The notes beneath the pieces were generated by a model. The model had not been told where the DNA came from and made no database searches. It saw only the letters and a program-made list of their open reading frames with translations. The position numbers were made by a program, and so were the translations under genes. A DNA stretch of 64,000 nucleotides from Octopus sinensis (Eukaryota): NCBI RefSeq assembly GCF_006345805.1, contig NC_043014.1, positions 19,220,001 through 19,284,000 on the forward strand. Reading direction: 5' to 3'. Below are positions 27,501-33,500 of this stretch, in pieces (the first letter of the stretch is position 1; each line of letters starts with the position of its first letter).

Positions 27501-30500
27501 AGAGAGCGAGAGAGAGAGAGAGAGAGAGAGAGAGAGAGAAATATAGATAGCGGAGAACCCATAGAATATGCTACTCAGGGCGAATACTGCCGTAATACAA
27601 GCTTATTCACAGTGTCTATACATTAATTATCCTATACAAATTGCTATTTTAATACTTTCTCATTTTATATATATATATATATATGTGTGTGTGTTTGTGT
27701 CTGCGTGTTTGTGTGTGCGTGTGTGTGTGTGTATGTGTTTATGTGTGTGTCTGTGATTGTGTGTATGTGTGCATGTTTGTGTATGTGTAAGTATATATGC
27801 GTATGTGTGTGTGGGTGTGTGCGTGCGTGTATGAATGCACATGTATAAGTAAACATTATCAATATTACATAATGTGTCACTAAATGCTTCACAGCTGCAG
27901 TATTTCGACTTAGATCCCTTTAAAGATGTCCTAAAATACACCATACTTCAAAGTTTGCTGGAAGGAATATTGCCCCGGAAGTGAATGAAAACGTGAGATA
28001 CCGATATATCGTTGTTATTTCCGCTCATCAGTATCAAATACTCCTCTCCCGAAACAAATAGCAACGTTTATCATTATACTCTTGAACTAAAATAAATTTA
28101 ATAAATTAATACAAAATAAACTGAATACTTTTATTTTAATGTTTGGGTAAAACTGGACGGCAGGATCCCATCCCCATTGATCTGTTTACAACAGCTACAA
28201 ATATTGGAAGATATCGAAGATCTAATCGAAGTTGTAATTACATTCATTAGTGACCACTTCCGTTCTGTAATCTATTCATTATCACATTCCAGCGTTGTTT
28301 AAATAATTTCATACTGACAGTGATTCATTTTCTTGGAAATGATGCAACACACTATCAAATGTATTACTACAGGATATTTATGCAAAGCAAATTAGTTTTG
28401 CTACAGTAGTGTTGTAACTGCGACGTTATAACGAAGGTAAACGTTTAGCAATATTGTGACAAACTCATATTTCCCACTGGTGTATGTATTTATTTGTATT
28501 ATTCTTAATAATTGGTCTTAATTACAACTTCACTTCTAGTAATGGAACTATTTACAGACGGAAGCTATTCTATAATGAATGCATTTCGATTTTCAATTAT
28601 TTCATCGATGGGGTTCTGTAGTATAGGCTGATCAAAGTAAGAACATATATGGCAAAGTAATCGTCTACTACTGCTAATGTTTTCATTTCCCCTTGATATA
28701 CATATCGAACCAGGTCAAGGTGTTCTAATAATGATAATCTGACATTTAGATTCATATTAACCCATGTGCATATTACAATCGGTTACCTGTTTTATGAGAC
28801 TGTATACATACTTTGCTAACAGATATATATTTCTCCATTTATAAATGTTTCTATATGAGCATTTGCATATATGCAAATATATATATGTATATATATATAT
28901 ATAATATATATATATATATATATATATATATATATACACGCGAGGGGTTACAGAAAGATTCCTGGCTTTATTGGTATTGCGCAAGGCCTGGTTGGAGATC
29001 CAAAACTTCAGAGTTCATTGAGAGGCCTTAGTCAAAATGAAGGACAGCTGCGAGATGTGTATGTATTTGACGGTGTGACCGTCCAGATGAATATGATTTG
29101 CAAATTATATTCATCTGGACTGTCATACCGGTGATCTACGGACATTTATGTAAGTAATATTACGTAATATATTAATAGTGAAACATGTATGCGAATAAAC
29201 CATATTATTATTGCTTTTTCTTTTGTCTTGTTCGATTACGTTTTTCTTGAGAACATTTCTTAGTGGTTAGACCATAGCGGATCTATTTCTAGCATAAGGG
29301 TGTCCGCATAGTGGTTTCCCTCTAATATGTATATAATACAATTTTATTGAACCTTCAGTTTTTTTTTATATGCTAGACCACTGGTGTGAAATCGATGTTA
29401 ATTAAATTAATATCTAATTTCTCACCCTCATTTTAAATTATATATACATACATATATATATAATATATATAATATTATATATATATATATATATATATAT
29501 ATAATATATATATATATATATATCGTGACGTATTTTTGCCATTTCAATATGGCTAACCCCTAAGGGTGGATGCTACTGTAGTTTTTAGCCCCAGGAGGAC
29601 ACACTCTCCAGCTGGCCATAGACACACTATCTGTGTCCTGTCAGTATTTGCAAAGGGAAGTCATCCTTCCCGTCTTCAACTTATGATCACACGGACTCGA
29701 GTTTCGAGGTATTGACCTCTCGTCAGCGTGTGACAATCATAGTTGTCGCCGAGAATTAGATTTCCTTCACAAACTTATACTTTTTCCAGCGCCCACTGTC
29801 GCTGATATTGAAAAAGTGAAATCAAACAATGATAAATATCAAAGTAGTTATATACAGTAGCGGTAACACATCGTGACGTATTTTTGCCATTTCAATATGG
29901 CTAACCCCTAAGGGTGGATGCTACTGTAGTTTTTAGCCCCAGGAGGACACACTCCTCCAGCTGGCCATAGACACACATATTTGTGTCCTGTCAGTATTTG
30001 CAAAGGGAAGTCATCCTTCCCGTCTTCAACTTATGATACACACGGACTCGAGTTTCGAGGTATTGACCTCTCGTCAGCGTGTGACAATCATAGTTGTCGC
30101 CGAGAATTAGATTTCCTTCACAATACTTATACTTTTTCCAGCGCCCACTGTCGCTGATATTGAAAAAGTGAAATCAAACAATGATAAATATCAAGTGAGT
30201 TATATACAGTAGCGGTAACACATCGTGACGTATTTTTGCCATTTCAAATGGCTAACCCCTAAGGGTGGATGCTACTGTAGTTTTTAGCCCCAGGAGGACA
30301 CACTCCTCCAGCTGGCCATAGACACACTATTTGTGTCCTGTCAGTATTTGCAAAGGGAAGTCATCCTTCCCGTCTTCACTTATGATACACACGGACTCGA
30401 GTTTCGAGGTATTGACCTCTCGTCAGCGTGTGACAATCATAGTTGTCGCCGAGAATTAGATTTCCTTCACAAATACTTATACTTTTTCCAGCGCCCACTG

Positions 30501-33500
30501 TCGCTGATATTGAAAAAGTGAAATCAAACAATGATAAATATCAAAGTGAGTTATATACAGTAGCGGTAACACATCGTGACGTATTTTTGCCATTTCAATA
30601 TGGCTAACCCCTAAGGGTGGATGCTACTGTACACTCGAGTCCGTGTGTATCATAAGTTGAAGACGGGAAGGATGACTTCCCTTTGCAAATACTGACAGGA
30701 CACAGATAGTGTGTCTATGGCCAGCTGGAGGAGTGTGTCCTCCTGGGGCTAAAAACTACAGTAGCATCCACCCTTAGGTGTTAGCCATATTGAAATGGCA
30801 AAAATACGTCACGATGTGTTACCGCTACTGTATATAACTCACTTTGATATTTATCATTGTTTGATTTCACTTTTTCAATATCAGCGACAGTGGGCGCTGG
30901 AAAAAGTATAAGTATTTGTGAAGGAAATCTAATTCTCGGCGACAACTATGATTGTCACACGCTGACGAGAGGTCAATACCTCGAAACTCGAGTCCGTGTG
31001 TATCATAAGTTGAAGACGGGAGGATGACTTCCCTTTGCAAATACTGACAGGACACAGATAGTGTGTCTATGGCCAGCTGGAGGAGTGTGTCCTCCTGGGG
31101 CTAAAAACTACAGTAGCATCCACCCTTAGGGGTTAGCCATATTGAAATGGCAAAAATACGTCACGATGTGTTACCGCGACTGTATATAACTCACTTTGAT
31201 ATTATCATTGTTTGATTTCACTTTTTCAATATCAGCGACAGTGGGCGCTGGAAAAAGTATAAGTATTTGTGAAGGAAATCTAATTCTCGGCGACAACTAT
31301 GATTGTCACACGCTGACGAGAGGTCAATACCTCGAAACTCGAGTCCGTGTGTATCATAAGTTGAAGACGGGAAGGATGACTTCCCTTTGCAAATACTGAC
31401 AGGACACAGATAGTGTGTCTATGGCCAGCTGGAGGAGTGTGTCCTCCTGGGGCTAAAAACTACAGTAGCATCCACCCTTAGGGGTTAGCCATATTGAAAT
31501 GGCAAAAATACGTCACGATGTGTTACCGCGACTGTATATAACTCACTTTGATATTTATCATTATATATATATATATATTCATGTAAATATTTACACATAT
31601 CTACTATATAATTTTCTCTTTAGAATCAATCTCCAAAGCTGAAAATATAGAAACCAGAACATTTTTCTAAAAAGAAAGCAACAGTTCAGTTCATGCAGTG
31701 GGAAGCTTTCTTCAGCATTCCGGAATACATATCTCAACTTCACACACACACACACACACATATATGTATATATATATTATATATATAATATATATATATA
31801 TATATAATATATATTATATATATATATTGAAGTAGATAAATGAATTATCTAATACGGATAATTCAAATGATAACCGATACCTGGGTAGCAAAAATCACAA
31901 CAGAAAAAGCACGGTTGAAGTTACGACCATGGGGCATAAAATCCGTGCCTTAGTGCGGAAATTTGAAGTTTTATATATTAAGTGTAGGAAGAAGTGGAGC
32001 TGAACGAAGATTTAACAAAATTCCTTTTTATTATTTTCTACATATGTTTCGAAGGCTGCAAAGTCCCTAATTCGGATTGAATAAGGAGTTCATTTTGCAG
32101 CCTTCTCTTCAGGAAAATCCAGGAACTTAATTCTCCAACAAAATGCTCAGCAAGCTTTTCGACAAACGCTCACGAGGAGCCCATGAACTAAATGACCACT
32201 TATTTCATGGGCTCCTCGTGAGCGTTTGTCGAAAAGCTTGCTGTGCATTTTGTTGGAGAATAAGTTCCTGGATTTCCTGAAGAGAAGGCTGCAAAATGAA
32301 CTCCTTATTCAATCCGAATTAGGGACTTTGCAGCCTTCGAAACATATGTAGAAAATAATAAAAAGGAATTTTGTTAAATCTTCGTTCAGCTCCATTTCTT
32401 CCTACACTTATATATATATATATATATATATATATATATAATATATATATATATATATACATATATATATATATAAGTACACATATATGACCTGCTTTTT
32501 TAAATTTTATCCCTTAGCCACTTTTCACTTGGTTATCTCTCCAACTACGGAGGCTTCTGTCTGCTAACGCCATCTCCGTAATAGCACAAATATTTATAAG
32601 AAAGACAGTGATTATCTTTCATTCTTCAACCCCCACCTCACTCTGTCTGTCTCTGTCTCTGTCTCTTTCTCTGAGAAAATCTCAGGCCTGAAACATTATT
32701 AATTTCTCTTTCCGTGGCACCAATTTTCATGCGAAATTGCAATCTTCATTAAATTTTATTATATAAAATTGATGTCACAGTTACCAAGAACATCCTGAAA
32801 CATTTTTTGTTAATTATAGTATACAGATTAGTCATATTGTAAATACCGATGAGCGATAATTGTCCTTCATGGATGAGTTGCCTCTTGGGACATGTCAGCA
32901 GCTTCTCACAGGGTTGTTTCTGTAACATGTGTTTCATGAACTGAAAGAAGCAAACAAAAGCAACAATTAAAAAAGTTATACAATTAACTGCGTATATAAA
33001 TGTGAATTATTTGTTTGAGCGTCCCCTTGTATTTAGAAACTAAAACACAAATGGATAATTCCTTCCTAGTTTCCAGAAAATGGCGGATTCAAAACTTACA
33101 GGTGTTAGATTTAAAGTTTCTGAGACCACGTATACTATAATTCATATGAATATAAATAAGTTTATAGCTTCAAAAACATATGAATTATTATTATTATTAT
33201 TATTATTATTATTATTATTATTATTATTATTATTATTATATTATTATTATTATCATCATCAGCATCATCATCATCATCATTATTATTATTATTATTATTA
33301 TTATTATTATGATGATGATCATCATCATCATTATAATTATCATTATTATTATTATTATTATTATTATTATTATTATTATTATCATCATCATCATCATCAT
33401 TATTATTATTATTATTATTAGTATTATTATTATTAGTATTATTATTACTATTATTATTATTATTATCATCATCATCATCATCATCATTATTATTATTATT

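Follow-up and report, generated by a model that had tools for sequence, protein, structure and literature searches.

Hammerhead-bearing repeats in two opposed arms at an Octopus sinensis locus: a probable non-LTR retrozyme insertion

Introduction

Within a 64,000-nucleotide stretch of the Octopus sinensis genome (contig NC_043014.1 of assembly GCF_006345805.1, positions 19,220,001 to 19,284,000 of the forward strand; hereafter the window) lies a block of near-identical repeats, at window positions 29522-31562, that carries hammerhead self-cleaving ribozyme motifs. This locus raises the question of what kind of element the repeats represent and of how they might have come to lie where they do. 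A reading made from the letters alone (the original prediction) had taken them for a single, retrozyme-like tandem array belonging to a young and probably still active family. As set out below, the locus probably represents a single insertion of a hammerhead retroelement that is non-autonomous and non-coding, of the kind known as metazoan retrozymes lacking long terminal repeats (non-LTR retrozymes), with a unit of ~353 nt, and its anatomy differs in one major respect from the array that had been proposed.

Results

Five complete type I hammerheads

A 45-nt motif, CACACGCUGACGAGAGGUCAAUACCUCGAAACUCGAGUCCGUGUG, occurs five times within 29522-31562 without a single mismatch, as compared with zero occurrences expected in shuffled sequence. 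Its layout, CACACG/CUGACGA/GAGGU-CAAU-ACCUC/GAAAC-UCGA-GUC^CGUGUG, is that of a type I hammerhead, with helices II and III closed by loops and helix I open. Three copies reside on the minus strand (29688-29732, 30039-30083 and 30388-30432, with predicted cleavage after the C at 29694, 30045 and 30394, respectively) and two on the plus strand (30956-31000 and 31307-31351, with predicted cleavage after the C at 30994 and 31345). The catalytic core is complete in all five, comprising C3-A9 and G12-A14, the pairs G10.1-C11.1 and A15.1-U16.1 and GUC as the cleavage triplet. A further copy, at 30633-30647 on the plus strand, is truncated to helix III plus the helix I 3′ strand; lacking both the CUGANGA segment and helix II, it would not cleave in cis. 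The intervals between cleavage sites are 351 and 349 nt for the minus-strand copies and 353 and 351 nt for those of the plus strand. The original prediction had anticipated five identical complete ribozymes and one truncated copy, spaced at 349-353 nt, and both the exact-motif count and the measured intervals agree with it.

All five copies align to the Rfam family Hammerhead_1 (RF00163) over positions 1-45, each at 32.2 bits (E = 1.6e-5 when this region is searched and 4.2e-4 across the window). The comparison with Rfam that had been proposed as a check thus gave a divided answer: the alignment extends from end to end with a low E value, but the score lies below the cut-off of 34, and a scan run at the gathering threshold reports nothing. 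The shortfall is due to helix sequences that are unlike those of the amphibian-dominated consensus, and the core is not responsible for it. A structural descriptor of the authors' own recovers seven hammerhead motifs in the window, versus 0.01 per simulated window. The hammerhead aside, no Rfam family comes close to its curated cut-off in the array unit. The five array hammerheads are real.

Two inverted arms joined head to head

Tandem Repeats Finder splits the block in two, 29522-30631 and 30633-31562, with a period of 351-352 and with 3.2 and 2.6 copies, respectively. Units are arranged head to tail within each part, and the two parts have opposite polarity, one carrying three ribozymes on the minus strand and the other, on the plus strand, two ribozymes and the fragment. 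When positions are numbered from the first base after the cut along a 353-nt unit consensus, the minus arm (29522-30631, 3.15 units) begins with a 5′ truncation at consensus position 116 (30631), passes through two full units and ends at position 174 (29522). The plus arm (30633-31562, 2.6 units) begins, likewise 5′-truncated, at position 345 (30633), passes through two full units and ends at position 217 (31562). The arms are head-to-head inverted repeats, as exemplified by a 399-nt stretch that is 96% complementary to its counterpart, 125 nt away, and the proposal of a single tandem array consequently has to be replaced by one of two inverted arms.

The junction itself (30631-30633) consists of position 116 of the minus arm, an unmatched C at 30632 and position 345 of the plus arm. 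The 5′ ends of the arms therefore meet at the centre, cut short at different unit positions, and the centre is asymmetric, given the 125 nt that separate the complementary stretches. The 3′ ends point outward, each adjoining a (TA)n microsatellite: the left one, found both by Tandem Repeats Finder and in the sequence, spans 29439-29523 and is the presumed insertion target, and the right one, read from the sequence, spans 31563-31580. That (TA)n would be found at both ends had been correctly foreseen. The plus arm reaches beyond the minus-arm end by a 43-nt 3′ extension, or tail (31520-31562, consensus 175-217).

Intact ribozymes of one strand flank a full monomer on both sides in only three cases. 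Two are on the minus strand within 29694-30393 (30393-30045, 349 nt, and 30044-29694, 351 nt), and the sole plus-strand example spans 30995-31345 (351 nt). The idea that every unit is cut out by an intact hammerhead holds for these three units only, as a consequence of the division into two inverted arms.

No further copy of the unit exists in the window, where the flanks of the array are unique. An exogenous viroid-like or delta-like RNA was considered and rejected, since unique genomic sequence surrounds the repeats on both sides. Look-ups of exact open reading frames (ORFs) in public assemblies gave no match to a related locus, and a 33-nt ribozyme pattern, searched in exact and degenerate form, had no match in metagenome contigs or in viral contigs. 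Farther out in the left flank, at 29068-29133, there is an inverted repeat or hairpin of ~60 nt with 90% self-complementarity and a sub-threshold microRNA-like Rfam match.

Variation among the units

Units are 97.1-100% identical to one another, in keeping with the near-identity noted originally. There are 14 variable alignment columns, of which 11 are indels of 1-2 nt, about half of them in short homopolymer runs, and three are substitutions. This excess of indels looks like consensus error from long reads, so the 349-353 nt spread in length may be non-biological, and the true units may be almost identical at 353 nt. The assembly as a whole looks like a lightly polished long-read scaffold, and single-base indels in this region are not to be taken as biology. 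A 100-N scaffold gap lies at 42917-43016, 11 kb from the array. Of the three substitutions, two are common to adjacent units: both full minus-strand units have A at column 64, and G occupies column 186 in the final two units of the plus strand.

The description of the family as young and probably still active does not follow from this identity and is not upheld. Copying from the same template, or homogenisation of the array, gives identical units at any family age, and identity is therefore no guide to youth.

The unit as an RNA

The consensus unit has a GC content of 42.8%, as against ~29-35% in the flanks, which falls within the range that characterizes non-LTR retrozymes (below 45-50%; PMC7229834). 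Across all stop-to-stop frames of a consensus multimer, the longest comprises 66 codons, and its peptide has no homologue in a peptide search. The absence of a credible ORF thus stands as originally described, and the array itself cannot be an autonomous Penelope-like element (PLE). Nor are there long terminal repeats (LTRs), as the only terminal direct repeats are the units themselves; no separate search was made for a primer-binding site (PBS) or a polypurine tract (PPT).

The monomer RNA is predicted to be strongly self-paired. The linear sense monomer has a minimum free energy (MFE) of -122.2 kcal/mol (z = -6.8), and none of 100 shuffled sequences folds as well; the antisense monomer has a z of -4.7, and the circular monomer an MFE of -117.1 kcal/mol. 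Within the ribozyme, helix I consists of 6 bp (CACACG/CGUGUG) followed by an internal loop (UUGU/UA), beyond which pairing is extended to a long stem in the whole-unit fold. Helix II, of 4-5 bp, is closed by CAAU, and helix III contains only an A-U and a C-G pair, closed by a palindromic UCGA loop.

These dimensions are those of the canonical metazoan type I hammerhead, in which helix I has 6 bp, helix II has 4 bp, and helix III has 1-2 bp with a small palindromic loop (PMC4209133). Such hammerheads cleave poorly alone and well as a dimer (PMC4209133), and the same weak-monomer, efficient-dimer behaviour occurs in axolotl and newt repeats (PMC7229834). Thermodynamic modelling predicts a comparable dependence here. 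For a 64-nt monomer, the MFE structure (-20.1) is a non-catalytic fold, the hammerhead shape reaching only -12.8 kcal/mol, while for two strands the MFE structure (-44.9 kcal/mol) is a double hammerhead with an 8-bp intermolecular helix III. The monomer is thus predicted to be inactive and the dimer to adopt the double-hammerhead form.

A candidate route of insertion

Non-LTR retrozymes are recognized by a type I hammerhead in head-to-tail repeats of ~150-450 bp, ranging from dimers to multimers (PMC7229834), an arrangement found in each arm of the present array; the inversion of the arms relative to one another lies outside that definition. Elements of this class are further characterized by dispersal in many mobile copies and by expression as monomer RNAs, both linear and circular (PMC7229834). 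The label retrozyme-like, as applied in the original prediction, is apt at the level of sequence (type I core, ~353-bp head-to-tail units per arm, 42.8% GC, no ORF or LTRs, self-paired monomer), and all the features by which metazoan non-LTR retrozymes are recognized in sequence appear to be present. What the label does not cover is the pair of inverted arms.

A series of steps could account for both aspects. Each arm would be transcribed as an oligomeric RNA, in which adjacent ribozymes would pair via the palindromic helix III (ACUCGAGU), forming a double hammerhead that is cut after GUC. Monomers of ~353 nt, bearing a 5′-OH and a 2′,3′-cyclic phosphate, would be freed and circularised by a host RtcB-type tRNA ligase to yield a stable, highly self-paired RNA whose permuted junction would read ...GAAACUCGAGUC|CGUGUGUAUC.... 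The circle, or an oligomer, would serve as the template for a reverse transcriptase (RT) supplied in trans, most likely by a PLE. If the PLE endonuclease targeted (TA)n, and if synthesis were primed from both sides of the break, two 5′-truncated tandem arms with outward-facing 3′ ends would result. That the array is transcribed, that its RNA is cleaved and circularised, and that a PLE reverse transcribes it, we infer from published studies of other species. In the model put forward for retrozymes, oligomeric transcripts are cut by hammerheads and joined by RtcB-type ligation, an RT acting in trans copies the circle to tandem cDNA, which inserts at another site, and PLEs are the likely mobilisers (PMC7229834). 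Phylogenetic support has been presented for retrozymes as non-autonomous PLE derivatives (bioRxiv 10.64898/2026.07.22.740005).

Insertions of PLEs take the form of partial tandems, often with an adjacent inverted 5′-truncated copy and with a tail of 30-40 bp at one end, and they are biased toward (TA)n or other microsatellite targets (PMC8557442). The layout of the array, with its outward 3′ ends, unequal 5′ truncation, one-sided extension and (TA)n target, suggests a resemblance to such insertions. Twin priming as known from LINE-1, in which synthesis is primed from both sides of a break, could give this same head-to-head geometry. Conceivably, then, the geometry of the array is the product of an RT primed from both sides of the break.

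Element B, a neighbouring hammerhead palindrome

A second structure with hammerheads, which is not part of the array and is referred to here as element B, is situated 270 bp to the right of it (31828-32410) between (TA)n tracts. Its sequence is nearly palindromic, the arms at 31979-32194 and 32197-32410 being ~97% identical and the left arm having an extra 151-nt 3′ extension. Each arm contains a type I motif, AUUUUC/CUGAAGA/12-bp helix II/GAAAC-AUAU-GUA^GAAAAU, with a palindromic helix III (ACAUAUGU) and GUA^ as the cleavage site. The structural descriptor places these motifs at 32033-32118 on the minus strand and 32273-32354 on the plus strand, and the two hammerheads are 154 bp apart. Rfam reports no hammerhead family in element B, only chance hairpin or microRNA-like matches at the palindrome centre, and the ribozyme assignment is based on the descriptor together with its simulation control. 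Hammerheads associated with PLEs have a long helix II and occur as opposite-strand pairs 100-700 bp apart (PMC4209133). With its dual opposite-strand hammerheads and long helix II, element B looks to be of the PLE type. It shares no sequence with the array unit beyond the ribozyme core.

A Penelope-like remnant and other content of the window

Co-existence with autonomous PLEs in the same genome is a further characteristic of retrozymes (PMC7229834), and the window contains one degenerate remnant, at 53.2-54.2 kb. This 5′-truncated element (53163-54230, minus strand) displays YVDDTF, then a thumb-like stretch, then a GIY-YIG-type endonuclease region with ...EH..., all interrupted by frameshifts and stops. 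On the strength of established knowledge of PLE proteins, we take these motifs to be those of a PLE. A full HMMER scan returned 963 homologues. In the long ones, RVT_1 is located upstream of the C-terminal part that gave the match, and weak GIY-YIG matches are seen in two homologues. Judged from these domain matches, the layout of the homologues appears to be the canonical PLE order of RT and C-terminal endonuclease. The sole protein match to one PLE piece is a 621-bp ENA metagenome contig (ERZ23499442), and a second PLE piece has no match. The contig aligns to 53163-53730 at 82% identity, running through a tRNA-like stretch in the PLE 3′ region (53153-53217, minus strand; GGCATAGTGGTTAAGAGCGCG...GAGTTCGATTCC...). 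It was asked whether this stretch might be a separate short interspersed nuclear element (SINE); this was rejected because the contig alignment runs through it, and it seems instead to be part of the 3′ region of the PLE family. ARAGORN finds no tRNA in the window. Element B and the PLE remnant both fit the PLE picture drawn above for the array.

There are 77 (TA)n tracts of at least 12 bp in the 64 kb. They make up only 4.4% of the window, yet the array and element B both lie inside such tracts. Transposon debris occurs at 13598-14440 and 38381-41182 on the plus strand and at 55838-56056 on the minus strand, consisting of Pif1 helicase and Pif1 2B (Helitron-like) sequences and of RVT_1 and zf-RVT of the long interspersed nuclear element (LINE) type; the LINE-type RT fragments are at 38.4-41.2 kb. 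Host exons were not recognised in any part of the window. A permissive Rfam scan yielded ~270 sub-threshold microRNA matches (mir-297, mir-3149, mir-466, mir-1277 and others), all far under their cut-offs. They look like artefacts of composition, the top-scoring ones being in (TA)n or simple-repeat stretches.

Discussion

How well does a retrozyme insertion explain the locus?

A number of observations weigh against the interpretation of the array as a retrozyme inserted by PLE-type machinery. There is a single locus, and no related locus was retrieved from any collection; that the family is mobile and multi-copy, and that the head-to-head layout is general in it, is therefore conjecture. Cleavage of the array RNA is a thermodynamic prediction and its expression a presumption, and the Rfam score is 1.8 bits short of the curated gathering cut-off (34 bits). 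That adjacent units share two of the three substitutions does not square with templating by one circle, unless the units were homogenised afterwards. Within (TA)n a target-site duplication cannot be discerned, the tail of 43 nt somewhat exceeds the published 30-40 bp, and the 151-nt difference between the arms of element B is well outside it. As to the link with PLEs within the window, the remnant is degenerate, Pfam finds nothing significant in the PLE pieces, only a weak RVT_1 match, the 3′ region of the remnant has no recognisable hammerhead, and the remnant shares no sequence with the array unit or with element B. Finally, a LINE RT could yield the same geometry by twin priming, and LINE-type RVT_1 fragments are present in the window.

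Other histories of the locus must also be considered. The array could be a hammerhead satellite that grew and was rearranged purely at the DNA level, by unequal crossing-over, slippage and local inversion or fold-back, with the ribozyme as a passenger and no RNA-mediated insertion. Only one locus is seen in the window, (TA)n is common there (77 tracts in 64 kb), near-identical units are the expected outcome of array homogenisation, and the variants common to neighbours (M2/M3, P2/P3) fit local DNA-level spread. Simple inversion of a continuous array nevertheless fails, because undoing the inversion joins consensus position 174 to 345, so that a second deletion is needed. A purely DNA-level history would likewise have to accommodate outer ends that both fall exactly at (TA)n, ribozyme cores that are intact in five of five copies and an unrelated element, 270 bp away, with the same inverted, (TA)n-bounded design. 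These considerations make such a satellite rather improbable. A different concern is that the family is real and the head-to-head join is an artefact of assembly, arising from a chimeric or fold-back long read or from a mis-join in the tandem repeat. The preponderance of indel over substitution columns (11 versus 3) indicates that a long-read assembly was incompletely polished, a gap of 100 N interrupts the scaffold at 42917-43016, and inverted and tandem structures are known to cause assembly problems (PMC8557442). Unlike the product of a missed adapter or fold-back read, however, the junction is not a symmetric palindrome, the 125 nt being one-sided and the arms breaking at different positions. 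Mirror units also differ at substitution sites (M2 A/T versus P2 G/G), the outer ends differ by 43 nt, and the arms enter different unique flanks, all of which leaves an artefactual join improbable as well.

A final alternative retains the PLE but dispenses with a separate retrozyme family, the units being tandem pseudo-LTR (pLTR) fragments, that is, solo pLTRs left after 5′ truncation of an autonomous PLE. It draws on what is known of PLE insertions, which are heavily 5′-truncated, form partial tandems and inverted copies, and have hammerheads in their pLTRs, and on the finding that retrozymes and pLTRs are sister sequences (bioRxiv 10.64898/2026.07.22.740005). Set against this, the ribozyme is of the canonical metazoan form, in which helix I measures 6 bp, helix II 4-5 bp, and helix III is short and palindromic, and not of the minimal PLE type, with its long helix II and short helix I; moreover, more than three complete units follow one another without any ORF remnant, and the unit is dissimilar to the PLE remnant of the window. 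Of the alternatives weighed, solo pLTRs are the least probable.

Insertion of a non-LTR retrozyme remains, on this evidence, the probable explanation. A more ambitious version of it can be formulated, in which the locus is a nearly unaltered record of a single PLE-mediated, doubly primed integration of retrozyme RNA into (TA)n, and in which read-through of the arms would produce a near-perfect RNA hairpin of ~0.9 kb. This version must be regarded as doubtful. If it were true, the ~0.9-kb hairpin could feed small-RNA or ADAR editing pathways acting on the whole family, and the locus would provide direct structural evidence for the still-hypothetical step in which PLEs mobilise retrozymes.

Relation to known systems

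In animals, non-LTR retrozymes give rise to abundant circular RNAs made by ribozymes; the class is widespread, and its recognition is recent. They are known from cnidarians, molluscs (mussel), rotifers, platyhelminths, annelids, arthropods and amphibians (PMC7229834). The searchable literature holds no description of a cephalopod retrozyme, the only trace being a count, in the paper on the giant squid genome, of 235 hits to Hammerhead_1, and characterised retrozymes would thus extend to cephalopods if the attribution of this DNA is right. Taken alone, another invertebrate retrozyme family is expected and not surprising. The locus is a new example of the retrozyme class with one uncommon trait, the head-to-head, PLE-style anatomy, which is informative only if it recurs at other loci. 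The copying of retrozymes back to DNA has so far been inferred only from their co-occurrence and sequence kinship with PLEs; should the anatomy recur in further copies in the genome, the family would give insertion-site evidence for the PLE link.

Among the systems with which the array can be compared, plant LTR retrozymes (PMC4918200) share with it a non-autonomous nature and a presumed mode of propagation, as they too are thought to be processed by hammerheads to circular RNA intermediates. Their own distinguishing traits are type III hammerheads located in LTRs, a PBS and a PPT, units of ~700 nt, GC contents above 55%, 4-bp target-site duplications and mobilisers of the Gypsy family, none of which applies here. 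The array does not qualify as an LTR retrozyme of the plant kind, its motif being type I and LTRs being absent. With PLEs and their non-autonomous derivatives (PMC8557442, PMC4209133), the likeness extends to partial tandems, an inverted 5′-truncated neighbour copy, an extension at the end, a microsatellite target and hammerheads. The array differs in being without an ORF for RT or GIY-YIG and in having a ribozyme of the canonical type, the PLE-like structure at this locus being element B.

The ribozyme itself recalls newt satellite 2 and the axolotl HHR_Amex1 (~330 bp), whose architecture it shares: the core is CUGACGA, helix I has 6 bp, helix II is short, and helix III is made of an A-U and a C-G pair with a palindromic tetraloop. 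The Rfam Hammerhead_1 consensus, to which the array copies align over all 45 positions, is of this architecture too. The tetraloop is GCGC in the amphibian repeats and UCGA here; the rest of the unit differs as well, and the amphibian arrays have very high copy number. The retrozymes of the mussel Mytilus galloprovincialis (~350-390 bp; Cervera & de la Pena 2020, PMC7229834) would belong to the same phylum as the present array, again if the cephalopod attribution is right. In both cases a type I hammerhead resides in AT-rich, non-coding tandem repeats of ~350 bp, with a strongly self-paired monomer and with PLE sequence alongside, degenerate in the octopus window, a likeness that is drawn from published descriptions. 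The mussel ribozyme cleaves as a monomer (observed rate constant, kobs, of ~0.1/min), whereas the motif of the octopus array is predicted to depend on dimerization, and the array is distinguished from the mussel repeats by its two inverted arms. The mussel and axolotl monomers that have been studied (DRtz_Mg353 and Rtz_353) are, like the consensus unit described here, 353 nt in length (PMC7229834).

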